Notes under the pieces: model-generated
What the model saw: the letters and a program-made list of their open reading frames with translations, nothing else
Database searches by the model: none
What the model was told of the DNA's origin: nothing
DNA from: Oikopleura dioica
Taxonomy: Eukaryota; Animalia; Chordata
Assembly: GCA_907165135.1 (NCBI GenBank)
Contig: OU015567.1
Location: forward strand, 310,001-374,000
Length of the DNA: 64,000 bases
Reading direction: 5' to 3'
Made by a program: the position numbers and the translations under genes
Shown here: in pieces, positions 41,895 to 64,000 of the stretch
Layout: each line of letters opens with the position of its first letter
Numbering within the stretch: position 1 is the first letter of the stretch

Positions 41895-42432
41895 GCCAAA
41901 AGTAGTAAGAGATGAGAAAAGAGATAAAAACTCGTGCAGAGAGCTGTAACTGTAAATCATCCCTCGGCCCGTGTCGCGGCACACCTTTACCAGTGCGCTG
42001 GGGAGTTAAACTTATGGAACCCAGCCGCATTGGTCAAGGTGCCACCTGACCGGATGGGAAAATGACAGCATGAAAGGAAGCACAAAGCATTAAGGGTGTC
42101 CACATCGAAGAGAATCAATTTCGATGTTGACACCCTTATTGTTCACTTCACATGCTTGGCCTTTTCTCTAATGCCAAAATCGACCTCATGTAATCGAACT
42201 GGATACCCTTAACCGGGCTGGACGCTAAAAATCTGTCTTGGTAAATCGTTAGCACCAGAAATTGACAACCATCTGAGAAATCTGGTTGTGAACAGACGGT
42301 AGCAAACGGCGCTGATGACACCTTCGACTGTAACTCTCCATTCTATCATTTGACTGTTCTTCAGTTGATGATTTTTTCTGCTGAAAATGATCAAAAAAGA
42401 ATCTGAATAAAACCATATCTTTCTTCCAAGAC
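41895..42432 (+). repeat. 538-bp segment duplicated directly at 63451-63988
   Basis: Colinear match with about 4 substitutions seen by eye. Confidence 0.9.
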
Positions 42433-42800
42433 GAGATTCCGTGAATTGTCTACTAGACGCCGAAACTGACGCCCAAGATTTGAGATAGAAATCGACAATC
42501 TTGGGCAGTAATTAAAAACTCTAATTGACAATCTTGGCCGCTGAAATTCGCTCAGCTACGGTAAATGCTGAACTCGCCAACTAGTGATTAATTTTCCATG
42601 AAGCGATATTCCTATTCCAGACCGTCCAAATGAACCAGCTGGTTGTTCCCCTTCCGATATCGCTTATCAACTCAGCATGATTTCAATTTGCGCGAACGCA
42701 TGCCCAACAAGTGGCTCAGTTAACGAGAAAAGGCTAATTCAAGAAGCTGATTTCTATTTTTTTTACTTTTGTACTTTTTCTTTTGTTTTATTTCTGAAAA

Positions 42801-44288
42801 ATGAAGACAAATACTGTTTTGGCGACTGTATTGGCCCAGGCCGCGAGCGGACTAAGAGTTGATTTCGGAAATAATGACTCGAAAAGTTACAGGTAAACAG
42901 TAAGGGAAGGGACTAAGCTGGGCAACCTGTGTTGAAAACCTGAGTCAGGGTCTTGAAAGCGTTTTTATGAAAAGCTGCGACTCAGCGACCCTAACCCTGA
43001 CTCAGGTTTGCTTAACAGGTTGCCGAGCCCACGGTGACCCCCTTAAAACACTATGTTTGCAGATCACTAGACGAGCTCCAGAAGCAACGCGTCCGGGCCG
43101 CCTCTAGAATCGCCACCGACCGCGAATCGTTCATCGCCAATCTTCGCAAAAACAACTTTTTCGCCGTTCCCGAATTCGAAATCACAAAAATCGTAGACTT
43201 GAATGTCGACCTTCGCGATGTGCGACCAAACGACATTGATGTTGATTTTCTGAAAATGAATCGCGGCTTTGGTTTTTTTGGAGAGTGACGATCCTCAAAG
43301 CCGAAGTCCGAGAAAGACGATTTTGGATGATGAGCCGAAAGAAGAGGTTTTTGAGAGCTTTTCAGAGGAGGCAATCGAGCTGGATTTTGAGGCTTCCGGG
43401 GAAGGATCAGGAAAGAGTCTTGAATAGAGGACATACTTTGAGTCTAAGACCTAATCTTTTTGTATCGGGCAATTTTCAAAACTCTGCAGGCTCCGATCCA
43501 TTGACAACCGAGAGTCCACTTACAACCGAAAAATCTACCGTAGAATGGATGGAAGAAAATACCACTCGATTGGAACTGTGGTCAACCGTAAACGGATACG
43601 AAAATGAAGAATCGACAACATCAGAGATTTATACAACATCTGGGACAACAACATTGGAACCAACTCAAACAACTCAAAATGCTGAAACAAGATTTAATCC
43701 AATAGATAAGGCAGCTTTTTTCGGCAATCCAGGGGCGGTTCTCTTCCTTGATTTTTTGAACTTTATTGAGCAAGAATTGATTTGAACCAAGAAACAGTTA
43801 CTACTGAGAGCAATCAGCCAATCACTTCCGTAATCAAAATCGAAAATGAAGCTCTCTCAATCGCTCCCTCTGTTGATGTTCAGTGCTCTGCAAAAACCAT
43901 CTGCGTCGAGTTCACCAAGTCCTATCTCGCCCAACACTGGCACGAGGACAAATGGTGGGGTCTCCACTTCAGCCAGCTCTGCAACGAGCTCCATGTTTAT
44001 GAAGACGCGACGACGTTTAAAATGTGTCTTGGGGATGAAAACACTTCGGATTTTCTCAACTGCGGGACGAACCTGAACACCAATGCGACCCATGCTGTTT
44101 TCTCCAACCACGTGACTCACTTCTTCCCCGATCGATCGAGCACAGCTGGATTGGAAGTCGGTACTTTTGGAACGCAGAAGATTTTTGAGTGGAAATGCAC
44201 CTACCCGCTTCAGATGGTTCATAGTTCCGAAGTGCGCCAATGGACGAAAATGAAAACAGCGACAAATAATCATCTTCTTCTGAAATGA
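42801..44288 (+). pseudogene. 5' half of a ZP-domain gene (signal peptide, Thr-rich region, ZP-N), truncated at 44230 by a rearrangement; frameshift in the T-run near 43275
   Basis: MKTNTVLATVLAQAASG start. ZP-N Cys pattern CSAKTICVEF...LC...MCLG...CGT...FSNHV...IFEWKCTYP. Sequence after 44230 is unrelated to the ZP continuation found at 63161 and 48436 on the minus strand. Confidence 0.8.
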
Positions 44289-44620
44289 GAAAAATAATGA
44301 TCAATAATGTCACATTGTAACCCTTACCCTCACCCTAACCATAAGCCTAATCGTATATGAAAAAAACCATAGAACCATAAAATTCTTCATCTCATCTTTG
44401 TTAATGCATCAATAAATAAAATATTTCAATAAATAAATATGTCATTCTCTATGATTCAAGCACTTATTCAGAAGCACCCATTCCTACAGTCGGAGCGCGT
44501 TACTGTTCAAACGAAAGTCATTCACGAATTTATGAAAGTGTAAATTGACACAATTATAAAACTGACGATTACTGAATTTCTCGCAAAACTGAATCTTGAG
44601 AAAGACAAAATAAAAAAAAA

Positions 44621-47457
44621 ATGGAGCCAGTCAATGATATAAATGATCAATTACAATCAAATAGAGAGATTACTCCGTCAAGAAGTAGACCTATCTCGAG
44701 AGAAGAGGTTTCAATTCATTCTTTTGTAGCTTGCGAGAGCGAAAAAAAGTGTAACTACAGGGAAGCTGTCTGGGCTATTCTTGTCCTAATTTTTGCCGGC
44801 GGTATCGTTTTGGCCATGACTTTGCCCTTCATTCTTGAGCCATTCAACACGACAACAACTACAACTACGACAACCACAACGACAACAACAACTCCTTTCG
44901 ACGAAGGTATCAAGAGTTGTCATTTTTTCTATTTTCAAATGAATTCTAAAATTGCCCTCAGATTGGGCAAATTGCGCGAGATGCAAAGAACGAGTAGACA
45001 TATGGAACCAAACGCGCGGCAATAATGATGACGATGAAGGATGCTTTCAAGATGGTTTCGACTTTATTCAAAGATGCCCGAATCGGAATGATTTATGCTC
45101 AGCATCTCTTTGGGCCAAAATGTATTCTGATGGAGAAATTTTATACGAGATAAAACGAGAATGCGTTGGCAAGGATTTTGACAGGCAATGTTATAGTTCA
45201 AGCTTAGTTCAAAATTGTACATCTTTGTGTGACCCAATAGCAAGCGGCATCGGCTGCAATGTTGGCCTTGAGGATGTTTCAGATCAATTTGAGTCAGAAA
45301 ATAATGTGACAAGTTGTTATCAATGCGATCACGTTGGTAATCCAAGCAGTTCGGACTGTGTATATTTGCCCGCGAATCTCACAGGGGATGAATCTGTTGA
45401 ATGCCCTCGATATGCCAATTCAGCATGCTTATATGCTAGTGCTATAAAAGCCACGGAATTTCATAAACATTACTATCATATTCGATTTTATTTTAAGTAT
45501 TCCGCTTGAAAGAGCAAACAAAACCAATTTTACAAAGCGGAGTCAAATCAAGAGAATATCATCGAGGATGCGTGCCTTTTGAGCTTGAAAATGTAGAAAC
45601 TTGCTATGAAGAAACTTATACTGACGGCCGTAAAAAAATATAAAACAACATATTGCAAAAGCACATGTTCAAATAACAAATGTAACGATGAAGACTTGAC
45701 CTTCATTCCTCCAGTACAAACGACCTCGACCACAACGACAACAACGACAACAACCACCACCACAACAACAACTACCCCATTTGACAAAGGTAAGTCCGAG
45801 AAGTTATCGTTAACGAAATAAAATTTATCTACCAATGAGAAAGTTTCCTTTGAAGTTTCGCGTTTCTATATTCATTTGAGATTGGGCGAACTGCGCGAAG
45901 TGTACGGAAAAAGTCGATATTTGGAATAAAACGATCGGAAAAGGCGATATTGGATGCTTTCACGATGGCAGCGATTTCATAAAAAGATGTCCGGGTCAAA
46001 CTGATTTGTGCTTGACATATCTCTTGGCAAATATGTCCATGTCTGGAGAGATATCCTTTGAGATTGGACGGAACTGCGTAAATAATAATGTTGAAGAGGA
46101 CTGTTATGTGTCTGATTATTCTCGTGGGACTCAGCTCAAAAACTGTACGTCTTTGTGCGACCCAAGAACGACTGGCATCGGGTGTAATTTAAACCTTGAG
46201 GAAGTTTCAGAAAAATTCAAGTCAGAGAACGATGTGAAGAGTTGTTTTCAATGCGATTACAGAGGTTCTAACCCCAAATTTTCGAAATGTGTTAATCTGC
46301 CCCGGTATCTGGTCGGGAACGAGACTGTTGAGTGTCCTCGATATGCAAATTCAGCTTGCATGTATGCTAGTTCCGAACGAGCCACGGAATATCGTCTTTA
46401 TCTTTATTTGTTTATCTTTTTTTAAGTATTCCGTTTTTAAGTACAAACTCGGCCAATTTTTCAAATCCAAGAGCTTCCTGGGGAATTTTATCGTGCATGC
46501 GTACCATTCGAGCTTGAAAATGTTGATACGTGTTACACACAATATTCTTCTGATGGCCGTAAACGATACAAAAATAAATATTGCAAAAGCACTTGCTCAA
46601 CTAAAGATTGTAATTCGGAAAGCCTAAGCGCTGTTCCTCCCGTTCAAACCACTTCAACAACTACAACCACAGGCGTTTCCGAGACAACAACAACAAAAAT
46701 CGGTAAAAATTGAAAATACATCTTTGAAATTGCAAAGCAATAATTGCATTAATAAACGTAAATTATAGGCTTGGCTGTTTGTGCTCGGTGTGCTGAAATA
46801 CTTGGAATTTGGAATAATACCATCGAAGGCCAACCTGGATGTTTTAAATATGGACAACAATATAATCTCCCCTGTCCTGAAGGTTATGATCTCTGTCATA
46901 CGTCATTGATTGCAGCTATGGGTCGTTACGGGATGATGACATTCACAATTGCTCGCGGTTGTATAAAGACTACAGATAATCAGCCTATAAATTTTTGTAC
47001 GAGTGGACTTGGTACTTTTACACAACACAAAGAATGCGCAATTACATGTAATCCCTCAATTGCCGGAAGAGCCTGTAATTCAGGCTTAGAGGAAATATCA
47101 GAGAAATTTGAGTCAGAAAATGCTGTCAAACGATGCTTTCAATGTGATCAGGAGAACCTTAATGGTTCCTTGTATGGAAACCAAACTTGTTCTTATGCTC
47201 AAAATTCAACTAGTAAAAGTGTTGAGTGTCCCCGATATTCAAACACAGCTTGTTTCTCTACAAGTGCAAAACTTGTTTCTTATCCTCCATTAAAAGAAGA
47301 GTTTAATCAGTTCGCTCATCGTGGTTGCGCTCCGTTTGAATTTAAGAATGAAGAGTCTTGCTATGCATACAACTCCACGGGAGAAGAATTCAGCGGCTGC
47401 CAACAGACGTGCACGACAAACGACTGTAATTATGAAAATATGCATGGTTTCATCTAA
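44621..47457 (+). CDS. Type II membrane protein with three tandem Cys-rich units (paired Ly6/uPAR three-finger-like domains) separated by poly-Thr stalks
   Basis: TM segment AVWAILVLIFAGGIVLAMTLPFIL. Three homologous units CARC...CP...DLC...C...CN / CFQC...ECPRYANSAC...RGC...CN, with (T)n linkers near 44850, 45720 and 46650. Confidence 0.7.
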
Positions 47458-47545
47458 TTATTGAATTGTATTTGAATGAGGCAATCGAGACTGATATATT
47501 ATCACAATAGCTTTTTCATGCAATATTGCTTGGAATAAAACAGAA

Positions 47546-48436
47546 TTATGCAAGAGTCGAGTCTTCTGTTGGGCATTTTCTTGTCGCTCCATAAATTGCA
47601 ACGAGCATGACCATTGTGATAAGCGTTATCAGTGCGATTAGAAAGTGGTTGATAAAGTTAAACTCGGCATCAAAAGTTGCTTCTTCTCCTTGTTCCCCAA
47701 CGAGTCCTGTCGCTGGATCAATTATCAAGTACTCAGCTTTGGAATAGCCAGTGAATCGAATGGGACCAAGGGAGACAACATTTTGACCATCGTAAGAAAC
47801 ATCTCTTGGAGATCGAGATTTTGCGCATTCGACAGCGCAGCTACCATCAAAGTCTTCGATGCAGACATTGACTTTGCAGTGCATGTAGACATTTTCAGAG
47901 TTTGTGAATCTAAGAAAATCATCATCAACGAAGAAAACTTTTGTCTTACTTGAAAACTCGGGATTGCCAGAGAACTTCGGATTCTTGTCCATTTTCGCGG
48001 ATCGTCATTTCGATTTGTGAGCCGATTGGAGTTGTGCAAAAATCGTCGTAGAACTCGAAACCATCCTTATCTTTCAAAAAGTTACGAAAATGGATTGCGT
48101 TTTATGGTTTTTACCGTTGATGTCTTCAGTAGGAGTTGCCCAGCAAGAGACAACTTGAAGGTTTGTCCCATTCATTGGTTCTTCGAGAACGACTTTCATG
48201 TTCAGAAAATTTCCTGTATCCAAAGTCGGGCTAAAAATTGTCTCACTCAAATCCTAAAGAAATTATTTTACCTTGAAAGATTGATCAAATCCGTGTAGTT
48301 TTCATCGGCATACAATTCAAAATCCACTCCAAACTTTCCAGAAGCATCGAGTGAATCGATGACGATCTTTTTCGCTGTATTTTGGCCTCTATAAAAGTGA
48401 ATGAAAGAAGACTTGGAGCGTTCTTACTTATAAAGA
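47546..48436 (-). pseudogene. 3' half of the ZP-domain gene (ZP-C, furin-like site, TM)
   Basis: SGKFGVDFELYADENY, LQVVSCWATPT, VYMHCKVNVCIEDFDGSCAVEC, RSPR, LGPIRF and a C-terminal TM. It joins in frame to the ZP-N copy at 63159 once the retroelement is removed. Confidence 0.85.
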
Positions 48437-48702
48437 GAATCTAGGACAAGGGATTAGCAGCCCGCTAGAAATAGAACGCGGCAGGAAGCCTAGTAACCAG
48501 AGGCAGGGATTCCCAGGAGGCAGCGGAAGGTGTCAAAGGCGCCCGAGAGCACCTGGTTTCGAGCGGGTGCCCCGGAATCACGCAGGTTCATTCGAAAGGT
48601 TCTTAGCCTACAGCTAAAACCTTAAACGAGGAATTTTAAATAGAGCCTTTTTCTCAGCAGAAGCATTACCAATAAGACTCCTAGCTGAATCAAAAAGACT
48701 CT
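48437..48702 (+). repeat. Terminal repeat A1
   Basis: Direct repeat of 62723-62988; begins with GAATC. Confidence 0.95.
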
Positions 48703-48819
48703 AGGTAGACCATCAATCGATGCTACCTGCTTATTTCACCTCTAAAAGTCCACGGACTATAAAATCATTCAGCCTCAGGCAATTACGCCTCGAAGGCTCT
48801 GGGATTCTTACTCAGTAAG

Positions 48820-48870
48820 CGGCCGCAGCGGCGCGCCGAGCCGAGCCAATCAGCTTCAGGCTTCTTAGAT
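48820..48870 (+). promoter_or_regulatory. Putative element promoter (GC-rich + CCAAT box)
   Basis: gcggccgcagcggcgcgccgagccgagCCAATcagcttca. The aatcagcttca motif recurs at 52650 near an inverted CCAAT (52591) and a TATA-like site. Confidence 0.4.
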
Positions 48871-49188
48871 TCAGAGAAACCCTCTTCTTAGAAATTCGGA
48901 ATTCCTGTTTCTTCCTCGAAGCCCTAGACTTGCTGACCCTCTCATTTAGACATGATCGAGGAGGCCTTCGTCAAGGCAGCGCTGGAATTCGGCCCCAAAT
49001 GGGGAGTGGCTTTGGACTCGGATCCAACACGCCCAATCGAGAACTCCCAAAGAAGACTCCAAACCCTCAATGAGGAAATCTCTAGGAAAGGATCTCTTCT
49101 CCTCAGAATCTTTTAGGAACGGGCTATCCCGAACACCTTCCAAATTTAGGATAGGTTTTGATCCATTTAAAGAAACACTCTGCTCTTA

Positions 49189-52143
49189 ATGAGTCAGATA
49201 AATTGGAGAAGAATTTCCCGCACTGCAATGGCGGAGCAAAAGATTGCCACGAGACTCGTCAGACTTTATGTCCCCTCGGATGCAAACGAGCCTCTCTCGA
49301 ATCACAGGCTGATGTTCGATCTGCAGACTCCCTCAAAAGCGAGATTCAATTTCGCAGAGCTCTCCTCGTGGTCCCAGATCATTTTCACGGCGCCATCAGG
49401 AAAAGAATCACTCTGGGTCGCTCACAGGAGCAACGAGCCTGGTTTCATACTCTCCATCATCGCAGACGAGATTGCAGAAGCAGAAACCGACCTCGCGGAT
49501 TCTTGGCAACTCGAATCAAAGCCATATCCATTTAAGCCAATGGAGAGCCCCACGAAGCTTCTAAAAGCAGACTCAGCGGGCACGACTGAGGACCCAAGCG
49601 TCAAGCTGGACGAATGCGAAACCATCTCCAATCTACTCGAAGCCCTGAAAATAGAAAAAGGACCAATAAGAATCGTGGCCAGGAGGCTAGACTCTCAGCG
49701 TAACTCGGAATCCCAAAGCGCGATGGAGAAAAGCAGACTCTTTCCGAACAACATCTCGGAGGAGCTCAACAAATGGGCGAAAATCAAGAGCCAAGACTGG
49801 TTCCGCGAGTGGGAAGACCTAGAAAATCAAGATATCCTGAACGAGGGATTCTGGCATTTCGTTTGCCTCCGAGTAATCGGTGAGAGCAAAATCAAGACCC
49901 AGGCGAATTACGAACGCCCAAGCTTCACGGACGACAATTGGCTCCGAAGACTCATAAAGAAAGGTCTTGAAACGATTTTCGACGCAATGCCAAGGTCAGA
50001 CGCTTTTATTACGCCAGAAGAACTACTGGACTCGCTCAAGATGCTGAAGTCTCTCCACAGCGACTGGCATGAAATTTGCCATCAGAAAAATGCCTGGCTA
50101 GAACTCAAAGCAAACGAGGACACCCAATGGGCGAACAAAAAACCGGCGAATATGAACGCATGGATCATCGACATAATCGGCGAATATGCATCGGAAGACT
50201 CACCCATTCCGAATCCGACTCCCTTAACAAAGATTCTCTCACCACTGCTGCTCCACCTGGTGCAAAAACAGCTCATCCAAGACTCAGTCATTGGTCAAGA
50301 CGGAAGCTGCAAGGAAATGCCCACCCAATGGCACGTGGACTGGAGCGAACTCAAGGATTCCCGGTCCCTCAAAAAGTGGCTGGAGTCAGCGGCGAAAAAA
50401 GTTAACCCGATTAATACCACGGTTAGAGTCAAAGAAGTTGGAAAAGGGGATTCCCACTGGATCCTGTGGATTCCTTACAAAGTCGTACCTCAAATATGGG
50501 TTTTCAACTACGGCGAGGACTCTGATTTTATCAAAGCGAAATCCCTCCTCTCCCTTGCAGCCCACCCAGCGCTCACGCCGTTAGAATCAGAGGCGCTCGA
50601 GAAGCTAGCCTCCAAACCTTGGACCACCCAAAACGTCAAAGAATGCATCTCGGCGTTCCAGAAGCCAACAAGAAACTTCTACGCCTCAGGAGCCTGCTTA
50701 GTCGGAGTCAACCGCCCCTTTCGAACTCAGAAGATCATCCTGGAAATCATCGCCAAGGTTGTAAGAGACACAAAAGCCCATTCTCACTTGCGCTCACTCG
50801 AGCATAACCTCGGAATCTTATCAACTGGCTGGAACTGGGCAAAAGGCAAAAGATTCAGCCCAAACAAGACTCTGGACAACTTCATCGACACCTGGATGCA
50901 GAAAAGAGAAGAAGTCACGGGAGTCACGAGACTCAGATTCCTTCGAGAACAACCAGAAAAGAGAGAAAGATCGTGCGAATGGCCAATGTGTGGGGAAGCG
51001 GAAGCGAGCACGACTTGGTGTAAAACACATCAAGGATTCCAAGAACTCAAAGAATCTCGCCAACCAGACTGCTCAGAGAAATGCCGAGTCGCAAACGGCT
51101 TCATACAAAAAGGACTCCCCCAGGGCACAAAAATGTCCATCGACAGCGAGGAATGGCAAGAAACCTTCTACAAACTCTCCGAATCTTTCAAAACGACTAT
51201 GCTAAAGGACGCTGGCGAAGACCTCATCCAGAGAATCCAGACCAGCGTAGTCGAAGGATTCGACTCTATCGTAAACGCTTGGAAATCCACGGCAATCCTT
51301 TTTCAGGGAGAAAACGACACAGCAGCGAACCTCAGCGAAAGTTTCCGGAAGTTCGGAAGAGTCTTAAAAAGACCACGATTCGAGAATCCGGGAGCAGCTG
51401 GAATAGTCATCTACCACGCAGGGCTAGAAAGATGCGGAGGAAAATTCGACGCTTTCGTAGTTGGAAACACCTCAACCAGAAAGAATCAACATCTCCCGAG
51501 ACTGGCGGATTCTATCTCCAAAAAATCTGGAGACAAATGGATGGAAGTAGCGAAAATTATCAGCGAACTCACATGCCAGAAAAACACAGTGCTGATTCTC
51601 CCTTCACAAAAAGACGCCAAAAAACTCAGAGAAGCTCTCGTCACCTGGTCGGCACCTTACGTTAAATTCGTCACCCAGGGCCCAACGAAGAATCTTCATC
51701 GAACACTCCAAGGGGACAAAAACCCAAGAATCTCGGGACTCTGGGAAATCTTCCAAATGGCCTGCGATGGGGACTACGAATCTGCATTTACCCCGTGTTG
51801 GGCACACCCCAGGGTGGCGGAAACGATGTTCAGATGCTGCAACGGCTTCGACGCTAAAAACCGAGCAGTCTCGAAAATAGACAAGCTCAAAATAAGAGCC
51901 AATCGAACAACCTGGGAGAATGTGACGGCCAAAACCCACATTCTAGCCCCAGACGCACCGTTCACGACCCACATCAGGGACATAATCCTCGACGGAATCA
52001 AGGCAGCGGAGAATCTTGACCTAGACCACGGAGAGGAAGCCAAAGTCGAGAATCTCTTCCCGAACGTCTGGTCTCAAGACCGCCAAAACATCGAAGAACG
52101 ATTCGCTCGTCTGAATGTCGCTGAAGCCACGGGAAGCGACTAG
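49189..52143 (+). CDS. Element ORF1, 984-aa intronless protein of unknown function
   Basis: Uninterrupted ORF inside the element. Contains a C-x4-C-x9-C-x2-H motif (CEWPMCGEAEASTTWCKTH). Confidence 0.85.
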   Translation: MSQINWRRISRTAMAEQKIATRLVRLYVPSDANEPLSNHRLMFDLQTPSKARFNFAELSSWSQIIFTAPSGKESLWVAHRSNEPGFILSIIADEIAEAETDLADSWQLESKPYPFKPMESPTKLLKADSAGTTEDPSVKLDECETISNLLEALKIEKGPIRIVARRLDSQRNSESQSAMEKSRLFPNNISEELNKWAKIKSQDWFREWEDLENQDILNEGFWHFVCLRVIGESKIKTQANYERPSFTDDNWLRRLIKKGLETIFDAMPRSDAFITPEELLDSLKMLKSLHSDWHEICHQKNAWLELKANEDTQWANKKPANMNAWIIDIIGEYASEDSPIPNPTPLTKILSPLLLHLVQKQLIQDSVIGQDGSCKEMPTQWHVDWSELKDSRSLKKWLESAAKKVNPINTTVRVKEVGKGDSHWILWIPYKVVPQIWVFNYGEDSDFIKAKSLLSLAAHPALTPLESEALEKLASKPWTTQNVKECISAFQKPTRNFYASGACLVGVNRPFRTQKIILEIIAKVVRDTKAHSHLRSLEHNLGILSTGWNWAKGKRFSPNKTLDNFIDTWMQKREEVTGVTRLRFLREQPEKRERSCEWPMCGEAEASTTWCKTHQGFQELKESRQPDCSEKCRVANGFIQKGLPQGTKMSIDSEEWQETFYKLSESFKTTMLKDAGEDLIQRIQTSVVEGFDSIVNAWKSTAILFQGENDTAANLSESFRKFGRVLKRPRFENPGAAGIVIYHAGLERCGGKFDAFVVGNTSTRKNQHLPRLADSISKKSGDKWMEVAKIISELTCQKNTVLILPSQKDAKKLREALVTWSAPYVKFVTQGPTKNLHRTLQGDKNPRISGLWEIFQMACDGDYESAFTPCWAHPRVAETMFRCCNGFDAKNRAVSKIDKLKIRANRTTWENVTAKTHILAPDAPFTTHIRDIILDGIKAAENLDLDHGEEAKVENLFPNVWSQDRQNIEERFARLNVAEATGSD

Positions 52144-52927: not shown

Positions 52928-53939
52928 ATGACCCGAGACGCACAAGACGCACAGATTCACGACGCTGAAGGGCTCGAAAGACTCCGAGAGGAAGCCGGAA
53001 TCACCAAAAACCCGATCGACGAGCCAGACTACTGGAGGAAGATCAAATCGGCGATCAAGATGGACCCGGTGACTCAGTTCCCGCAGGAATCGAAGGGACG
53101 AATGCTCATTCGACTCAGACTGAAGATTGGAGACAGATTCAAAAATCTTCTCGAGCAAATGGTCGAAGGAATGGGTCAGAAAATAAAAAGAAAAAGAAAC
53201 TTAAAAAAAAAGAAAATTTTTTAAATATTGAAGAACAATTTTCATAACAGACTCTCAAGCCTTAGAATCGGCTTCTATTAAAATTCTGACCCTCATTAAA
53301 GGACTCACCGACCCCAACGCTCAGATGTCCCTCGATGGCTGGCAGAAATCCATCAACGACATCTCCCGAGTCCTCTCCGAGCTCGTGCGCGAAGAAAACC
53401 AGAAAATCGCCGAGGACGACCGAGCCCAGTCAGACCAGAGTCTCTTCTACGGCTGCCTCAACGCCGCCAAAGCCGCCATGGACGTCCACCCGCTCCTCAA
53501 CATCGTCTACATTGAGGAGTCACTCGTGATCCCGGAAGGAAGACTCCCAGCGTATCAAGAAAGAGTCTCAGCTCTCAAGGAAAAGGGTCAAATTAAAACT
53601 CTACACATTAAGTCGAGCCTTACAACTTTAAAAAAACCCTTTCAAAAGTCAAGAGCGGACTTTCTCCTCCGCCAAGATCGACTCCCCAAAGATGGCAAAG
53701 ACTCTCTGCGTAGCTGGAAGAAGCAAAGACGAAACGAGTACGTCAGCGATGGAGTCCCCAAAGACATTGCAGCTACGCTGGCAAGACGCGATTCAAGGAC
53801 CATCGGCTGGACGTCGCGACGAGACGGAACGACTCAGACTCACCCGGTGGAAGCGCAGCAGGCAAAATGCCAGGAATCCCAAACCACCCAAGGAAAGGCT
53901 GAAAGAATCTCAAAGAAAAAAGAGATTCATTTAAAATAA
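52928..53939 (+). CDS. Element accessory ORF2, unknown function, at least one intron (53175-53250)
   Basis: Removing GT..AG 53175-53250 joins ORFs 52895-53224 and 53325-53939 in frame. AATAAA signals follow at ~53935-53965. Confidence 0.7.
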
Positions 53940-54435
53940 AAATTGAAATTAAAACTCGAATAAAAATTAATAGAAAAAATGACGCACCATAAAACAAATC
54001 CACATAAGAAAAGGTGGATGAGCTCTTGGCCTTTCAATTTTGACTCACTTAGGCCAATTCAAAAAATAGAATCAGTCCTGATTTCAAAGAATCCAAAATT
54101 ATCAAAAATCCATTAAAAAGCCAATTCAAAACCCTCTTTCAGCCAAAAGATTCAGACTCGGCAGACTCGGCGACTCAGACGGAGAATCCAACTTCCTCAG
54201 TTTCGACTCAGACTCAGCAACCAGACCCTGCTCCAGCACAAGACTCGGCCAACAACGAAGAGGCAGACAGCGTCTCAGAACCAGATCTGTACGAAGACTC
54301 GTACAACGCCCGTTCAGGAAGGAGTCATAGAATTCCTAAAACATTTAAAGTCGAGCAAAAGTAACCACATAAAAAGAGAATCATATTAAAATTGTAACAA
54401 TCAAAAGACTCCACCCAAAAGACCCAACTCAACTC

Positions 54436-55167
54436 ATGCCTCCGGCCAGCCAAAATGCTCCAGTAGACTCCGAAGATGGCTTTTCTTCAGACGAAGAAAT
54501 CATGGAAGAATCCGGCGGAGAAGAAGATGAAGCTACAGTCGGATTCCCAGAGACTCAAGCCCAGAAAGAACAACAGGACTGGAGCAGACGCACAGACACA
54601 CTCTTCGAGTCAGCGGCGGAGCAGAAAGAAGCAGAAGAAAGACGAGTCAGAATCGCTGCCCAATGGAACGAGCCGCTCAAAGACATCAAGGAAGAATCCG
54701 AAAGCAACGCATCAGTCAGAATGGAGCAGAAGGAAAAAGCGGAAGCTGAAAGACGACTCCAGAAAGAAGAGTTCGAGAAGATTCAGAAGCTGAAGCAAGA
54801 ACAGGAGGACAAAGCGAGAGCCAGAGAAGCCATCAGACTCCGAATGCAGCGACAAGTGGATGAAAACACCAGAATCCGACGCGAATACCACGAGGAAATT
54901 CAGCGGAAGAAGGAGGAAGAAGAAGCTCAAAAAAGACGCCTCGCCCAAGACAAAGAAGCAGAAGAAAGACGCCGAGCAGCCATCAAGGCAGACGAAGAGA
55001 AAGTCCTCACCAAACCAGAAGTTGGAATCAGGCTCGTCGCAGAAACCGGCAGAAGAGGGAATCACTACTACCTGTCGAAGAAGGAAGCGAAGCTTATGAG
55101 CAGAATCTCAGGATCGGTTAGCACAGCAAAACTAGCTAAAAACTTCTTCAAACAAAAAAGAGTCTAA
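54436..55167 (+). CDS. Element accessory ORF3, acidic N-terminus + long E/K/R coiled coil (may splice to ORF4)
   Basis: 243-aa ORF; similar acidic coding-like sequence lies upstream at ~54140-54320. Confidence 0.65.
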   Translation: MPPASQNAPVDSEDGFSSDEEIMEESGGEEDEATVGFPETQAQKEQQDWSRRTDTLFESAAEQKEAEERRVRIAAQWNEPLKDIKEESESNASVRMEQKEKAEAERRLQKEEFEKIQKLKQEQEDKARAREAIRLRMQRQVDENTRIRREYHEEIQRKKEEEEAQKRRLAQDKEAEERRRAAIKADEEKVLTKPEVGIRLVAETGRRGNHYYLSKKEAKLMSRISGSVSTAKLAKNFFKQKRV

Positions 55168-55199
55168 AAGAACTGGGCTAACCAAAATAAGTCCGAGCC

Positions 55200-55699
55200 A
55201 TGCTCGATAATCGCCAAATCCAGAACTTCGAAGAAATCAGGCAAGCTTGGTTCAACAGCGAAGGACTCCTCAAATTCAAAGACTCCAAAAACCCGGGCCA
55301 CCGCCACTACAAGTACACCCTCCGATCCGGCTGGACCATCAAAGAAGGCACCGAAAACTGGAAGCTGGATCCAGTCGCCAGACTCAGCGCAGAGGAACGA
55401 CGAGTGGTCCATTACTTGGTGGAATTCCTCAACTACCAAGGAATCAAACGAAGATTCAAGGAGGCACTAGGTAAGAGCATATCTAAACATCGAAAATACA
55501 GAATCTAATTCATTTCTAGACACTGGACTCCTCAACCCGGCCAAGATGGACGCGATCCTCGTCTTTGCCTACAAGATCTGCGGCGGAAACCTGGTCCACT
55601 ACGTCCGATTCGTGTTCGTCCGACTCTTCAGACTCCACGACATCCCGATTCCCCCAGTGCACTCAGACGCCGCCCCAAAACCTCCACGCCACTACTAGA
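55200..55699 (+). CDS. Element accessory ORF4, unknown function, intron 55471-55519
   Basis: Removing the GTAAG..TTCTAG intron (49 bp) extends the ORF to ...EALDTGLLNPAKMDAILVFAYKICGG...PKPPRHY*. AATAAA lies near 55813. Confidence 0.65.
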
Positions 55700-56200
55700 A
55701 AAAGAAGAGAAGAAACTCTTACCAGACTCTTAGACTCATATTGCCTTTTTCCTCAAAACATTGAAACAGAACTTACCTCTTTCCATTCTCCAAATTCAAA
55801 AAGCTGTACATAATAAATAATTCGATCTCATCAGAAGATCTTCGCCTCTTTACTTCGAAGCATCACAAAATAGGAATCTAAACCGTAAATCCTCAAGCTA
55901 CAAGATAAAAAATCTTGTAATTAAAATATATGAAAACTCGCCAAATTAAAAGAGCCAAAAAATTCAGAATGGAGAGTCAAAATGCAGAGCCGCCAGAGGA
56001 ATATAAATTACCTTCAGAGTCAGGCCAGGGCAACAAAGAGTCACAAAAACGCCAGAATCCCCTAAACCAATGACTTTAAAAAAAAGAGCCCCTAAAAAGA
56101 AGACTCGAACGACGAAGCTCCACCTTCGGACCAACCGGAAAGCCCGCCAAACGAGAGCCAAATTGACTCGAAGAATCCTCAGCAAGGGCAAGGCACTAGC

Positions 56201-57412
56201 GTGAACCTGGAGAGACTCAAAGGGCTCGTTTGGGACATCCAAAACAGCCTCAACACAAACGCTTCCATCCCACCAAAAAGAATCTTATGCTACGGCGAGA
56301 CGCTGGATGACAAGATCAATAATCTAGCAACAGAAGCTGCCAAAATCATCTCCGAGTCCCAAGAGGCCTCAAAAATTATGAAAACGATCCTCCAAGAAGC
56401 CGAGCATGAGGGTCTCCAGGGAATCCAACTGCTAGACGCCTTCCAAACCATTGCCATAATCGCGCACAGCCCATCCATAGGAATCAACCGAAGACTAGCG
56501 TCCACAAACAAGGTGGAGCTAGAGACGATTCAAGACACGCTGGAACTGACAGTCAGACCTGTAGTGGAGAAGCTTATGAAGCAAGTCCACGCTTCTAGCG
56601 TCTACAATTCGGCGGAAATAACCTTCTGGGCCAAAATGATGGAGCCACTGGAAAGAGACTCAGTTTCAAAAGATGATCTTCGGAAGCTAGAAGAGGCCGC
56701 GGCTTGGATCTTGGGAAGGCTCTGGAATGAATCTGCAGAAGCCATCTTCAGAATGATCTTAGCGAGATGCAAGCCACCAGAAAACCTCAACTCTCGAGCA
56801 TCACCAAGAATGACGCTCATAGCTCACATTTGGAACATCAGATTCAAAAAGATTCTAGAGTTGAGCCCGGACAAAAGACACGCTTCCTTCGCGAACGAAA
56901 GACAACTCAGCATCTCCATCGCCAACTCAATATTTGGAGAAATCCTTTTCCAGATAACGAACACGCGATGCATCTTTCCAAGACTCCTATCAAGTGCAGC
57001 AAGATCAGCATGGACCCACCTTAACACGCTTTGCGGAGCATCGAATCCCATCAGTCTGACGCTCAAAGAGTTCTTAACGAACATTGACTCGAATCAAGAT
57101 TACACGGCCTGGGACGCAATCCGTACGCTGCGCAGAATCTGGCCACCGAGAGATTGCATCGCTGATGCTGAATATAGAGCCCTCAATCTCAACGACATCG
57201 ACAACCGCCTCGAAAGAGGACTCGAAGATCCATCCTCACTTTACGGCACCACATACGAGAAACTCTTCTGGAAAATCCCGATTCCGAGAAGCTATGAGTC
57301 CGCCCGCACAACCGCGGGATTCAAACGAAAGAGAGCAAACGAAGAAGACGAAGAGCTGGAAAACAATCGAATCAGAGATGCAGGCCATGGCGAGCAAAGG
57401 GATCTTCAATAA
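56201..57412 (+). CDS. Element ORF5, helical protein in the gag position (overlaps pol start); true start probably ~55969
   Basis: 403-aa ORF whose last 35 bp overlap the likely pol ATG (57378), like gag/pol overlaps in DIRS elements. Confidence 0.75.
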   Translation: MNLERLKGLVWDIQNSLNTNASIPPKRILCYGETLDDKINNLATEAAKIISESQEASKIMKTILQEAEHEGLQGIQLLDAFQTIAIIAHSPSIGINRRLASTNKVELETIQDTLELTVRPVVEKLMKQVHASSVYNSAEITFWAKMMEPLERDSVSKDDLRKLEEAAAWILGRLWNESAEAIFRMILARCKPPENLNSRASPRMTLIAHIWNIRFKKILELSPDKRHASFANERQLSISIANSIFGEILFQITNTRCIFPRLLSSAARSAWTHLNTLCGASNPISLTLKEFLTNIDSNQDYTAWDAIRTLRRIWPPRDCIADAEYRALNLNDIDNRLERGLEDPSSLYGTTYEKLFWKIPIPRSYESARTTAGFKRKRANEEDEELENNRIRDAGHGEQRDLQ

Positions 57413-59800
57413 ACTCAGATTCCCAATCATAAACCCAGTAAACATTCACAATGATTCAATCACCGGCCCAAAATCCTTACCTGAATGGAGAGTCTACGAG
57501 ACAGATCTGCTTCACAGAGTCATAAAAGTCCTAAATAACGAGATCAAGCCCGACTGGAGAGAACTGACGCTCAAAAAAGAATCCGATTTCATCGCCGGCC
57601 AATGGACCCACAACAAAGACAACTGGAGAGCCTTAATCCATCAGATGCCCGAGAAAGTAAAGCCTCTCATCTACCACTTTGTCCACGCCGGAGCAGACCT
57701 ATTTTTGAATCTCAAAAGAATACCGCCGAAGAAGCCAGTCAAATTCAAGCGAAAGGAACTGGTAACTATTTGGAAAAGAAACTCAGCCAACGCGGACACC
57801 CTTAGGAAGATGGACGGAAATTTCAAAACATGGTACAACCACAGACTTAGACTCTCAAAATTTGTGCCTCGACCATACGAAAAAATCGGCAAGCGATTCA
57901 AGACTCTCACAATCCCGAGTCAGGAAGCTGTAAGAGAAAGAAGCGACGAGATTGCCCAACAAATTACCGACTGGTGCGAAATGGGCTCAGTAACAAGAGT
58001 CACAGAAGCCAAAGGATGCTGGATCCGCGCGGGATTCGTTCTGGTTGACAAGCCAGGCAGGGAGACAAGAGTCTGCTGGAACGGTGGAGTTCTCAAACCG
58101 CTTCAACTATACACGTTCCCGTGTAAATTGGAAGGCATTGGAACAGCGATTCAGATGCTCAAAAGAGGGGATCTACTGTACAAATTCGACGATAAAAAAG
58201 GTAAAACAGCAGCAAAACTTCAGAACCAAAAACTCAAATCTAGGATTCCACCAGCTCCCGCTCAGCGAAGAGAGCAAGAAACTCGCCTGCTTCGAATGGG
58301 GAGGCCAATATTTCAGAAACAATATTCTAGCATTCGGAATCCCAGCCGCGCCCGGAATCTACCAACTCATGAATCTGTGTGGAGTCAATTTCCTGAGGAA
58401 AAACGGAATCAAAATCACGCTCTATTTGGACGACAGACTCTTGGCGGTTACTCCAGAATCTGAGGAAGAACGCCGCCAGCTGCTGTCGGGAGAAAAAACC
58501 AGCAAGGAAGTCTGGGCAACGGTAGCGACGCTAGTAGCTCTAGGTGGCTATGTTAACATCGCGAAAAGCACCTTCGAGCCTACCCAGAGAATAGAATTCC
58601 TGGGCTTCATTCTAGACACGGAAAACGAGACGGTAGAGATACCAATTCAAAGATGGTCAGCCCTAAAGAATCTCATGAAAGATGCCGAGGCAGAGGCAGA
58701 AATTCCGACGCGGACACTGGAAAGAATCAGAGGCACAATGGCAAGCATGGCGGAAGTCCTCCCGAACATGAGAATGCTCATCCGTCAAACAACAATCCTC
58801 ATCAGTGAAGCCATCAGGAATGAAAAAGAATCCTGTATTCTGACTCAAGAAGTCCGAGAGGAATGGAGACTTTGGAATCTTCTGGAAGAAAAAGGACTCA
58901 AGAGGCATTGGACCAAATTAAATCGACAAGAAACCGGTCTCATAATATACACAGACGCTTCTTCGCACGCAGGAGCCATCGTCATCGAGCACTGGAAGCT
59001 AGAAGAAAGATTCGCGTGGGAGCCGGACGTAGCAGACAAACACATCGGTATCAAAGAAGCCCTCGCGATCCAATACACACTCGAGTGGTACGGTCAGAAG
59101 CTTCAGAACAAGAGAGCGCTGTTCCTCTGCGACAACGACAGTGTGGTTCAAGGAGCGATAGCGGGTAGCAAAGACCCGGAAATGAATCGGATTCTAGTGA
59201 GAATCTGGACTCTGGCGCATCGCTTCAACATAGACATGAAGGTCGATTGGGTCAGCACAAAGAAGCAGCTGGCTGACGCTCCTTCCAGGGATTTGGACTC
59301 GAGGGAGCAAAAACTAACGGCAAATGGATTCGCTTATCTCCAATCTCACCTCCGGGATCCGCTCGACATCGACGTGGCAGCAACGGTAAGACTCAAACAG
59401 CGAAGCGGACTCGCAAATAAACTTCCATTCCGTTCAGCCACTCAACAATAAATGCAGAGACTTCATCGCACGCCGAGAGACGAAAGGAGCCTTTGGAAAA
59501 GACTTCCTAAGCTTCCCAATCCACGCACTTATCGGAAAAAAATTGTATGCGTTCCCGCCTCCGAAGATTTCTCACAAATACTACAACAGACTCACCGAAA
59601 TAGCAACGCCCTGGGCTCTGGTGGTGCCATGCTTTGAAGCCGAACCTGTAGTGGTAACACAGGCAAGACTCAAAGGCTACAGAATCTTTGACATACCGGC
59701 GGATTCCATCCTCACGCCCTCAAAAATAAAAACTGCTGAAGGCTACTGGAAAGTCGCGCTAAACATCTCAACCATAAAAATTATTGCTAATAGACTCTGA
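57378..59800 (+). CDS. pol: reverse transcriptase - RNase H - N6-adenine DNA methyltransferase-like domain; introns 58201-58243 and 59386-59437
   Basis: After splicing: RT KFDDKKGFHQLPL...LAFGIPAAP...LYLDDRLL; RH YTDAS...HIGIKEALAI...LCDN...WVSTKKQLADAPSR; MT IDVAATPLNNKC...DFLSF...LYAFPP...WALVVP. Confidence 0.93.
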
Positions 59801-59903
59801 AGCTCTGCAGCCTCTCTCTTAGACTCACCATTCATCCAATTCACGGAAAACACAAATCTGACTCTCAAACCCTCTGTTTTTAGACTCGGAATCAATTGAA
59901 AAA

Positions 59904-61211
59904 ATGGCGGAACAGACCAAAACCCTCTCCAAGCTTCTTTCTGACCACACGAAGCTCACGGAGCAGGAAGCGAAGACGCGGGCGGTCAGAGTCCAGATCA
60001 CCAAGGCAGCATTCTACGAGCATTCAAAGACTCAAGCTCAAACGGAAGAGGCTGATCGACTCATCGTGGAAATTGAGGACATCAGAAAAGACATGGCGAC
60101 TCACGATAAGCTCACCGACTCCCTCATTGTAAGTAATCTCCACCAAACGCAGAAAGAACTCCCTCTTATTACAGAAAGAGATCGCGGAACTCGAAGCCAA
60201 CCGCGACAAGAGTCTCGAGATCAAAAAACGAGAGCCCAACGCCAAAAAGCGATCGGAGGAGGAAAACAAATTTTATGACCGTTGGAATCCATCGGAAATA
60301 GAATCTAAACTCCGCCGCCTGATTGCCGACAAGATGGAGCGCTACAGCCTCAAGGGGTCCATGTTCGCCCAAATCAAAGCTCGAGAAACGAAAATCACCG
60401 AGCTCTCCCAAAACACGACCGAGTCAGCAGCGGTCTTCAAGGAAAAGGACCCGCTCACGGGTGTAGAATCCTATTTCATGGTAAGAATAAATAGTAAAAA
60501 GAAAAAGAAAAAAATCTTACATCCTAATTTTCAGACTCAAGTCGGCTCAACGAGCCTTCCACAAGATGAAGGAGACTCCCTCCGAGACATAAGCAAGGAA
60601 TTCCGAGCGTTCGTCACGGATGCCAAGACTCAACGGACCTTCAGACGAGAAAAGCTCCTGAAGTTGCTCGGAAACTATAAGAGAGCCATGACTCCCGAAT
60701 ACACCGAGCGGGCGATCATCGAAAGCGTCGTCGACGAACTGATTCGAATGCCGGACATGACCCGCAAAGACGCGCTTCTATCCCTCACGGTAAACCTACA
60801 ATTCAAAAAAAAACACACACGACTCATAATCCACTTTAGCCGCTTATGCGCCCAAACGTGCGCCACCAATTCGACAGAGCCATGACAATGAACACGACTC
60901 ATCCGACCTTCAAGAAGATGATCATTAACCCCTGCGATGGTTCAGAGGACTGGCGCACCGAAAAAGACTCTAAACCAGGCCGTGGGCGTCGAGGAGGACA
61001 CTCGAATGGCGGCCAAAGCAAGAAGCAGAAAACGGACCATCAAGGGGAAAATGCGAGCCCCAAATTCAACCCCGAAGGAAGCGGACATTCGGGAGGCCGA
61101 GGCCGAGGCCGCGGGCGAGGCCGAGGACGAGGCCGCGGGCGAGGCCGCGGCGGTGGAAGCAATCAAGGAGGAGACACTAAGAAGTTCCAAGACCAAGGCG
61201 GAGTCGAATAA
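59904..61211 (+). CDS. Element ORF7, coiled-coil protein with C-terminal RG/RGG tail (gag/nucleocapsid-like); introns 60129-60174, 60481-60534, 60790-60839
   Basis: GT..AG introns join ORFs 59904, 60334 and 60846 in frame. The C-terminus reads GRGRGRGRGRGRGRGRGGG. Confidence 0.8.
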
Positions 61212-61393
61212 TCCCAAAGACTCTCTTTAAGAATCAATCCACTTCTTAAGCGAAGAATAGCCCCTGGCAGTGCGCAGTTTTTCGCCTAGTTTCTCTCTTT
61301 CAAAACCACTGCCAATCTTTAAAAGCTTTTCACACTTAAAAACATTCAGGCCCTCTAAAAAAGCTCGAGCCCGAAAAGACTCAATTCAGATTC

Positions 61394-62562
61394 ATGACTT
61401 GGCTCGACTACAAGAATCTTCTGGAGCACTGGGAAGTGGCGGAAGCAATGTCTACCTTCAGCTACGACGAAGCCGAGACCGACGACGTGATTCAGCATTT
61501 TCTCGACAGGCTCCTCACCAGACCAATACTCAAGGCCTACGCTTACGAAAAAGGAATCACAACGATTCAAGACGTAATCGCGTCTCAAACGAAGAAGACT
61601 CTCACGGCCAAACAGAAAAGGAAGATCAAGACCTGGTGCGAGCACAGAGCTCGAGAATCAGCAGCCGAGGCACTCCAATACCCCAAGGTAAATCAATTCC
61701 GCTCCCCTAGGCGATAACCCTTTCCTTAAGCAAGCGGAAGTCGTCGACGAGCCCGAAGCGATTCAGTTGTGGGAAGAGCTTATGAAAACAAACAAGCCAA
61801 AGCCAAGAGAAGCAGCTATCGCCTTCTTCATTTGCTTCACCACGGGTTCCAGAATGAAGGAGGCCCTCAACCTCAGAATCGAAGATCGCGAAAGCGTCAA
61901 AGAAGACGGAAAAGAATTCTGGCGATTCCACATCCGATCCAGCAAGACGGACCCATTCTGCAAACGCATGGAGACTCTCACCATTCCAATGGAAATGAAG
62001 CACGGCGTCCCGCTAGCTCTCGAGCTCCGAGCACAAGTGAGAGACCGAGAATCAGGTAAAATTCGAATCCGACTTACCCTAAGCTAAATTTTTCGATAGG
62101 ACTCGTCCTCAAGACTCTCGAAGGTCACACCAGAATCGCCTCGGACTACTTAGCCCGCTATGGAGCCAAAGCAGGACTCTCTAAGAAGGTTTATAACTTA
62201 AAATCCTCACGTACCGTAAGAATCCAATTCAGGTTTCCGCACATTCAGGCAGAGTCAGTTTCTACATCGAAGGACGACGCTCTGGCCTCTCTCAACAAAC
62301 GCTCGCGCACACGCTCCGCTGGGCGCCAGGAAGCTCGATGCCGGACTACTACGAAAGATGCTGGCTTGAGTGCAGCAATTTGGGAGCGCCAGTCAGCGTC
62401 GCAAAATCAAGAGCCAGAAAGCGAAACGGAAGCGACAACGAAGACAACTCTCTTCAGGTAAAAACCAGCATGACAAGGGAGACTCCTTCATTTAAAAAGG
62501 TTTCAGATACCCCAAGAACCACAAGAAGCCAATCAAGAGCAAAAGAAACAGAAAACAACTGA
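61394..62562 (+). CDS. Tyrosine recombinase; introns 61688-61730, 62056-62099, 62189-62232 (possibly 62458-62499)
   Basis: The spliced protein holds the full catalytic set: TTGSRMKEAL (R), SSKTD (K), VSAHSGR (HxxR), LRWAPGSSMPDYY (W, Y). Confidence 0.92.
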
Positions 62563-62677
62563 AGCTTAGTCCACAGATGACGCTGTCAACATGAAAAAGA
62601 GTCTTTCCATCCTTTTTTTTCCTGCCAAATTAGAATCCTTAGACATCGATTGACGAGAATAACGAGAATGGTAGGGA

Positions 62678-62988
62678 GGGAATATTCCCATTACCATTGT
62701 TATTTGTGCGTGATTATAATACGAATCTAGGACAAGGGATTAGCAGCCCGCTAGAAATAGAACGCGGCAGGAAGCCTAGTAACCAGAGGCAGGGATTCCC
62801 AGGAGGCAGCGGAAGGTGTCAAAGGCGCCCGAGAGCACCTGGTTTCGAGCGGGTGCCCCGGAATCACGCAGGTTCATTCGAAAGGTTCTTAGCCTACAGC
62901 TAAAACCTAAAACGAGGAATTTTAAATAGAGCCTTTTTCTCAGCAGAAGCATTACCAATAAGACTCCTAGCTGAATCAAAAAGACTCT
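62678..62988 (+). repeat. Internal B1-A2 junction (circle-junction copy)
   Basis: B1 62678-62722 directly abuts A2 62723-62988 (...ttataatac|gaatctagg...). Confidence 0.92.
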
Positions 62989-63113
62989 CCCGCCCACCAT
63001 CCCTGAAATAAGCAGTACATGTAGGGTAAAACGAGCACACGCCCTACATACTGCCCAGTCCATTACCTTAGAAAGGCTCTTTCTCTACCACAGTATTGTA
63101 ATTGCGCGTGCTC

Positions 63114-63158
63114 GGGAATATTCCCATTACCATTGTTATTTGTGCGTGATTATAATAC
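63114..63158 (+). repeat. Terminal repeat B2
   Basis: Identical to B1: gggaatattcccattaccattgttatttgtgcgtgattataatac. Confidence 0.92.
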
Positions 63159-63454
63159 ACATCGGAACTATGAACCATCTGAAGCGGGTAGGTGCATTTC
63201 CACTCAAAAATCTTCTGCGTTCCAAAAGTACCGACTTCCAATCCAGCTGTGCTCGATCGATCGGGGAAGAAGTGAGTCACGTGGTTGGAGAAAACAGCAT
63301 GGGTCGCATTGGTGTTCAGGTTCGTCCCGCAGTTGAGAAAATCCGAAGTGTTTTCATCCCCAAGACACATTTTAAACGTCGTCGCGTCTTCATAAACATG
63401 GAGCTCGTTGCAGAGCTGGCTGAAGTGGAGACCCCACCATTTGTCCTCGTGCCA
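63159..63454 (-). pseudogene. Inverted duplicate of the ZP-N exon segment (43938-44230)
   Basis: 63162-63454 is the reverse complement of 43938-44230 (293 bp, no differences seen). Confidence 0.9.
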
Positions 63455-63988
63455 AAAGTAGTAAGAGATGAGAAAAGAGATAAAAACTCGTGCAGAGAGC
63501 TGTAACTGTAAATCATCCCTCGGCCCGTGTCGCGGCACACCTTTACCAGTGCGCTGGGGAGTTAAACTTATGGAACCCAGCCGCATTGGTCAAGGTGCCA
63601 CCTGACCGGATGGGAAAATGACAGCATGAAAGGAAGCACAAAGCATTAAGGGTGTCCACATCGAATAGAATCAATTTCGATGTTGACACCCTTATTGTTC
63701 ACTTCACATGCTTGGCCTTTTCTCTAACGCCAAAATCGACCTCATGTAATCGAACTGGATACCCTTAACCGGGCTGGACGCTAAAAATCTGTCTTGGTAA
63801 ATCGTTAGCACCAGAAATTGACAACCATCTGAGAAATCTGGTTGTGAACAGACGGTAGCAAACGGCGCTGATGACACCTTCGACTGTAACTCTCCATTTT
63901 ATCATTTGACTGTTCTTCAGTTGATGATTTTTTCTGCAGAAAATGATCAAAAAAGAATCTGAATAAAACCATATCTTTCTTCCAAGAC
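63451..63988 (+). repeat. Direct duplicate of 41895-42432
   Basis: Joined to the inverted ZP segment through a GCCA microhomology (63451-63454). Confidence 0.9.
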
Positions 63989-64000
63989 AGGGATGGAAAT

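Follow-up and report, generated by a model that had tools for sequence, protein, structure and literature searches.

An element-bearing ZP gene copy inverted between two direct copies in Oikopleura dioica: a candidate young, microhomology-mediated rearrangement

How does a gene that has been hit by a retroelement come to lie inverted between a truncated and a complete copy of itself? The question is raised by a locus of Oikopleura dioica (assembly OKI2018_I69, chr2, scaffold C5) that we analysed in a window of 64,000 bp (positions 310001-374000) holding the separated halves of a ZP gene, a neighbouring gene (Y) and a retroelement of 14,722 bp (E). The initial annotation of this window had proposed that a template-switching event, starting at the junction of element and host, inverted positions 44231-63454 and thereby split a single-copy ZP gene. 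We extended the window by 40 kb rightward on the same contig (pieces L011-L014; positions are given as extended coordinates where they pass the window) and compared the resulting 104 kb with itself. The assembled topology is a duplication-inverted triplication-duplication (DUP-TRP/INV-DUP) with two junctions, and not an inversion of single-copy DNA. Judging from the sequence, we hold with moderate confidence that the rearrangement is real and recent, that microhomology mediated it, and that it is linked to the element junction.

The contig is laid out as U-(a c b)-J1-(Y z3' E' b')-J2-(a MITE c b z3 Y')-W, MITE being a miniature inverted-repeat transposable element, and the gene copy hit by E sits inverted between a truncated copy 1 and a complete, element-free copy 3. 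Copy 1, on the plus strand, consists of segment a (41895-42432), the upstream region of the ZP gene, segment c (42433-43937), its 5' exons and introns, and segment b (43938-44230), the last 293 bp of a ZP-N-type exon. In copy 2, segment Y (44231-47545, plus strand), which is reversed relative to the empty allele, is followed by z3 (47546-48436, minus strand), comprising the ZP-C exons and a C-terminal hydrophobic tail, then by E (48437-63158, plus strand), which has split direct repeats and lies within the ZP exon, and finally by TGT and the inverted exon end b' (63159-63454, minus strand), which retain the original exon-element junction and match extended 66026-65731 at 100%. Copy 3, which is uninverted, begins with segment a' (63451-63988, plus strand) and extends past the window to extended 70229 (L011:6229, L011 being the piece that follows the window). 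Segment b is present three times (+, -, +), a-c twice in direct orientation, and z3-Y twice with one copy inverted; only two novel adjacencies, J1 and J2, are needed, and they explain all five repeat relations. The repeats described in the initial annotation were reproduced: 41895-42432 recurs directly at 63451-63988 over 538 bp with 99.26% identity, and the exon end 43938-44230 recurs inverted at 63454-63162 with no mismatch, followed by TGT (63161-63159) and the element end at 63158. A further b lies in direct orientation at L011:1731-2023, and all three copies are identical.

The 538-bp copy of a merely opens a 6.8-kb copy that takes in the entire locus. Extended 63451-70229 reads a-MITE-c-b-TGT-z3-Y', a collinear, element-free ZP gene with gene Y following tail to tail. 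At 63989, where the copy had been thought to switch to new sequence, the sequence does change, but the change is the insertion of a 232-bp MITE, found in copy 3 only (extended 63989-64220, plus strand, its first 12 bp at 63989-64000 closing the window), with 18-nt inverted ends at 94% and a 9-bp target site duplication (TSD), TTCCAAGAC; at least 10 other copies of this family, at 83-96% identity, are present in the genome. A third template switch at this position is ruled out, and the copy resumes behind the MITE with 1.8 kb of the ZP 5' part (64221-66023, matching 42424-44230 directly over 1807 bp at 99.67%), continues through TGT, and then corresponds to 48436-44229 in inverted orientation (66027-70229, 98.8%), extended 70229 being the counterpart of 44229. 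The contig past 63989 thus supplies an uninverted, empty ZP allele. The inverted block is additional to it, and a complete ZP gene persists at the locus together with its neighbour. No alternative haplotigs of the locus were found elsewhere in the assembly, a and b occurring on C5 only.

Both junctions are resolved to the base. At J1 (44229-44232), b ends against the far end of gene Y in inverted orientation, the two overlapping by 2 bp (GA): copy 1 reads ...TTCCGA/AGTGCGCC (slashes mark the joints), the empty allele ...TTCCGATGT/TCTTTATAAG, and the Y'-W boundary, on the other strand, ...AAAAAGA/AGTGCGCC. At J2 (63451-63454), the start of b' is joined to the start of a with the 4-bp GCCA overlap already recognised in the initial annotation, the left edge of a (p4; U-a boundary ...GTCCGCCA/AAAGTAG) being the acceptor side. 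The joint reads ...CCTCGTGCCA/AAAGTAG, to be compared with ...GTGCCA/GTGTTGG in b and ...TCCGCCA/AAAGTAG at U-a. Both junctions are clean, without filler or untemplated bases. Microhomology of at least 2 and at least 4 bp at blunt random joins has a joint probability of 0.0024, which argues against pasted contig ends, ligation chimeras and in-silico chimeric reads. Moreover, beyond these 2 and 4 bp the flanks of the junctions are unrelated, and J1 and J2 lie outside the sequence shared by their two sides, so read overlaps cannot create them. Self-comparison revealed no inverted repeat common to the two sides of J1 (p1 and p2), where there is GA microhomology only, and no reciprocal junction of the z3'-W type in the 104 kb. 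The 104 kb contain 0 N characters; joins made by Hi-C scaffolding are understood to leave N gaps. Exact-pattern scans of JGI metagenome contigs for J1 and for the end of b returned no match and are uninformative.

J1 is located 3 bp before the insertion point of E (3-5 bp allowing for the GA overlap), whereas the chance that a random breakpoint in the 6.5-kb locus falls within 5 bp of that point is 0.0017. E, or its heterozygosity, is therefore linked to J1, by a connection that is either biological or computational. The insertion itself is precise: the empty site reads ...CCGATGT/TCTTTATAAG, and in the filled copy E stands exactly between these two parts, with no base gained, no host base lost and no TSD, so that z3 runs continuously into b' once the element is taken out. 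The same target site in copy 3 is intact and unoccupied. The ends of E are arranged as A1...B1-A2-B2, with A1 (48437-48702) and A2 (62723-62988) matching at 100% over 266 bp and B1 (62678-62722) and B2 (63114-63158) at 100% over 45 bp, and six other copies have the same ends. The target resembles the element's own circle junction, TTATAA then 3 bp. The split direct repeats, the TSD-free insertion and this circle-junction-like target fit an element of the DIRS order.

The direction of change can be read from two comparisons. An old inverted paralogue (78%, extended 82821-83329, that is, L012:8821-9329) spans the Y'-W boundary without interruption, and an ENA protein of another lineage (P0002, 85% identical) runs straight across the b-z3 join (...HSSDALYK...) into a KKIV stretch that resembles the beginning of the next OKI exon. 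The ancestral state is therefore the collinear, empty copy, and J1 is derived. The paralogue shows that the neighbourhood has undergone inverted-orientation duplication before; this older and diverged duplication of the Y'-W region lies 12-15 kb further right, at 78% and 91% (L011:6159-7082; L012:8821-9329, L013:945-1248).

Differences between the copies are unevenly distributed. Substitutions number 5 over 556 bp of a and 1 over 1780 bp of c and b; 37 differences (substitutions and short indels, 2.7%) were counted in the outer 1.4 kb of Y, and 0 in the inner 2.8 kb of Y and z3, such that the 4.6-kb core round the insertion site holds one substitution and the outer parts are 0.9-2.7% apart; at most two sequence versions exist of any segment. 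Together with 0 differences over the 311 bp of terminal repeats of E, the near-identity of the core points to a young event. The one-base indels between copies all (7/7) fall in homopolymer runs, and each run is shorter in copy 3 (L011:1045-2369, L011:3594-4832), indicating uneven consensus and polishing at the locus. Two of them lie in ZP exons and would shift the reading frame of copy 3, the sole uninterrupted ZP copy: A5 to A4 in the ZP-N exon and, in the first z3 exon, T5 to T4. Shortened homopolymers are a typical error of Nanopore consensus, and these copy-3 indels are most likely unpolished Nanopore errors. A degenerate telomere-like tract (TAACCC, TTACCC, TCACCC and the like) was also observed at 44310-44345, near the end of Y and ~80-115 bp from J1, with one hexamer fewer in copy 3.

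According to the rearrangement that we favour, the chromosome would have been put together from three stretches. The first would follow the reference locus until exon part b ends; a jump at J1 would lead to the far end of Y on the other strand, from which the second stretch would run backwards through Y, the ZP 3' half, E and b; and a jump at J2 would return to the start of a, from which the third would run forwards through the complete, element-free locus. The joins could be template switches of a broken replication fork or products of microhomology-mediated end joining (MMEJ). The first break would have fallen where the right end of a tyrosine-recombinase retroelement, newly inserted, met the host DNA, and the third stretch would have been copied from a chromatid or homologue without the element. 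Both joints would then be present in the animal's DNA, the events would have taken this order, and the element end may have had a part in them. What survives of the template-switch origin put forward in the initial annotation is a pair of non-homologous microhomology junctions, the position of E inside the inverted block and the closeness of J1 to the element-host boundary; its third switch does not survive. Cleavage by the recombinase, also suggested there, may have been the trigger. O. dioica has lost canonical non-homologous end joining (NHEJ), and MMEJ was shown to act there on lesions that had been induced (Deng et al. 2018, as cited in PMC11067885). In an animal that lacks classical NHEJ and uses MMEJ, filler-free microhomology joints are the expected trace of a real break.

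It is also conceivable, albeit unlikely in our estimation, that insertion and rearrangement were one event, arising from a half-finished strand exchange by the recombinase. The enzyme would exchange a single pair of strands between the element circle and the ZP exon, and replication meeting this half-finished junction would yield one filled and one empty sister, the fork breaking ~3 bp from the crossover. The broken end would then be extended by microhomology-primed copying, backwards on the filled sister and subsequently forwards on the empty one. Such a course, if true, would explain the position of the breakpoint, the filled inverted copy, the empty third copy and the near-identical cores. 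Two further routes were considered and rejected. A tandem duplication followed by an inversion is less parsimonious, as the second event must break exactly at the junction made by the first, and a recombinase-driven, site-specific inversion, with the target as one site and a pseudo-site at Y'-W as the other, is contradicted by the absent reciprocal joint and by TCTTT-like motifs that are in direct orientation.

Rearrangements of the DUP-TRP/INV-DUP type have reportedly been described by Carvalho and colleagues at the human MECP2 and PLP1 loci. The locus studied here shares their plan, in which the sequence follows the reference to p1, runs inverted from p2 back to p3 and resumes the reference from p4, with b present three times and its middle copy inverted, and it likewise has two junctions, the second with microhomology. 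In contrast with the human cases, the scale here is kilobases rather than hundreds of kilobases, the first junction is free of inverted low-copy repeats and instead shows 2 bp of microhomology 3 bp from a retroelement insertion point, and the third stretch lacks the element, differing in this from the first two. We know of no published link of DIRS-order elements to rearrangement junctions. With the MMEJ of O. dioica, as PMC11067885 summarises it, the joints have in common the species, the 2-4 bp of microhomology and the absence of filler; unlike the induced lesions treated there, a 21.6-kb inverted insertion-duplication needs copying besides joining.

Several observations weigh against a real rearrangement of this kind. 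If E was already present and the event was intrachromosomal, E would be expected in copy 3; its absence requires a homologue, an element-free sister chromatid or a later insertion. The diverged outer parts require either later recombination or a switch between homologues, and fit an inter-homologue switch as well as later crossovers with normal chromosomes in the outer duplicated parts. Furthermore, in a small sample limited to right flanks, four other full-length E copies were compared (C4:4.06 Mb, C3:1.48 Mb, C1:8.01 Mb, C4:14.19 Mb), and for none of them does the right flank recur in near-identical form, so a general role of such elements in genome scrambling, to which the initial annotation had linked the locus, gets no support here. 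Finally, the copies differ as alleles do, in the presence or absence of E, in the absence or presence of the MITE and in patchy single-nucleotide polymorphisms (SNPs), with no segment in three versions, and HaploMerger2 cut the assembly from 99.3 Mb to 64.3 Mb, removing ~35 Mb of redundancy, a third of the total, and raising the contig N50 (PMC8008620).

The last two observations speak for a diploid-assembly artefact, in which both haplotypes of a heterozygous male were retained in one contig and J1 and J2 are absent from the animal. Haplotype A would be filled and haplotype B empty but for the MITE, each with a 6.5-kb locus, and A would have been broken at the insertion boundary and its distal piece flipped. 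We regard this as a strong rival, though less likely than a real rearrangement. The sequenced animal was one male with ~3.6% heterozygosity. Its Nanopore reads (median 840 bp, 221x) were assembled with Canu 1.8; Racon came next, then Pilon, for which Illumina reads of amplified DNA were used, and finally a single HaploMerger2 round and 3D-DNA, giving 64.28 Mb in 19 scaffolds (PMC8008620). At such heterozygosity, with merging on the scale given above, there is a genuine danger that haplotypes were retained. In the assembly graph, a 14.7-kb repeat insertion in the heterozygous state forms a branch point, which would explain a junction at that very place; the seven homopolymer indels, all shorter in copy 3, betray an uneven consensus; and further odd inverted arrangements from the family of E occur on the unplaced scaffold C13. 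Conversely, each junction would need its own chimeric read to survive 221x coverage, with neither junction in shared sequence, and blunt joins would have to produce 2 and 4 bp of microhomology at the low probability already given. J1 is placed 3 bp before the point where the haplotypes diverge, and not on it, and the right flanks of four other full-length E copies are clean. False (heterotype) duplications are usually found at gaps or contig ends and are collinear. The ZP locus is like them in showing side-by-side versions that differ by transposons and SNPs within a heavily haplotype-merged assembly (PMC8008620), but it has no N gap, its duplicate blocks abut neither gaps nor contig ends, and it contains an inverted piece and shows microhomology at both joints.

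Two unrelated real events, an older duplication and inversion followed by insertion of E into the inverted copy by chance or site preference, appear improbable. The outer parts of the copies, 0.9-2.7% apart, set beside the identical terminal repeats of E, would at face value make the insertion younger than the duplication, and the likeness of the target to the E circle junction (TTATAA then 3 bp) could account for a preferred site. However, the near-identical 4.6-kb core indicates that the duplication is not old there, the coincidence of the insertion with J1 would be a matter of chance (0.0017), and the same target site stayed unoccupied and intact in copy 3. The simple inversion of 44231-63454 across a single-copy ZP gene, with a short third switch at 63989, which the window alone seems to display because the 5' and 3' halves of the gene face each other and a copy appears to end at 63989, is very hard to credit, being refuted, unless the sequence beyond the window is misassembled, by the uninverted and contiguous segments at extended 63451-70229, and opposed also by the missing reciprocal junction and by the MITE with its TSD at 63989.

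Lineages of O. dioica differ by thousands of rearrangements of unknown mechanism, and within-population cases have been called for (PMC11067885). If real, the rearrangement described here would be a case of the within-population type caught young, with both junctions resolved to the base, the ancestral allele adjoining on the same contig, and one junction linked to a retroelement insertion that is still fresh. Should it be an artefact, the reference chr2 holds an extra 21.6 kb at this position along with a chimeric gene model, and the sole uninterrupted ZP copy in the reference carries two homopolymer frameshifts. The gene model in question, Oidioi.mRNA.OKI2018_I69.chr2.g3993 (P0001, 263 aa; window 42802-44288), is the truncated ZP 5' half; it crosses J1 and ends in 22 residues of unrelated, out-of-context sequence.

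The identities of the genes involved rest on profile searches, in which the exon pieces of the ZP gene and of the recombinase were searched one at a time. On the minus strand, two exons that lie within 47549-48253 match successive portions of the Pfam ZP-C profile (26-66 and 85-132, each with E ~7e-4), in agreement with the earlier placement of the ZP 3' half on that strand. Gene Y contains three tandem units of ~930 bp (window 44837-47272), each with a Thr-rich stretch and a Cys-rich part, for which no Pfam family was found. In E, the reverse transcriptase is detected above the cut-off (PF00078, E 8.7e-9, 35.8 bits), while the tyrosine recombinase signal is weak (PF00589, E 0.034, 14.4 bits, on piece 61767-62084). 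An HSGR...Y pattern is visible in piece 62197-62559, and 28 of 30 named look-alikes of the recombinase in the ESM Atlas belong to Phage_integrase clusters (score 0.95); a PDB sequence search gave no match for the recombinase, and a genome-wide PF00589 scan gave none on E. E is 99.26% identical to a copy on C4. With DIRS-order elements of the PAT-like and Ngaro kind it shares the A1...B1-A2-B2 ends, the reverse transcriptase, the lack of a TSD and a target like the circle junction; it differs from them in its large size (14.7 kb) and in a recombinase that is weakly detectable and split across exon-like pieces.

Other duplications were noted elsewhere in the assembly. Scaffold C13 (1-40000) begins with ~5.2 kb of a telomere-like 6-bp tandem array, beyond which direct and inverted duplications are nested in one another and include fragments from the family of E at 99% identity. 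Among these is a near-palindrome with arms of ~4.5 kb, whose fold joins element positions 52749 and 53092 and recurs in the other orientation; the inverted arrangements of C13 may be real subtelomeric structure or assembly trouble. Two regions of C5, near 13.90 Mb and 4.70 Mb, contain direct duplications whose topology differs from that of the ZP locus, and in one of these regions a copy carries an insert. In the region at 13.90 Mb (C5:13901185-13910699), a 2.1-kb segment is triplicated in direct orientation (98.4-99.7%), with a 56-bp tandem array between copies 1 and 2 and an insert of ~700 bp in the third copy.

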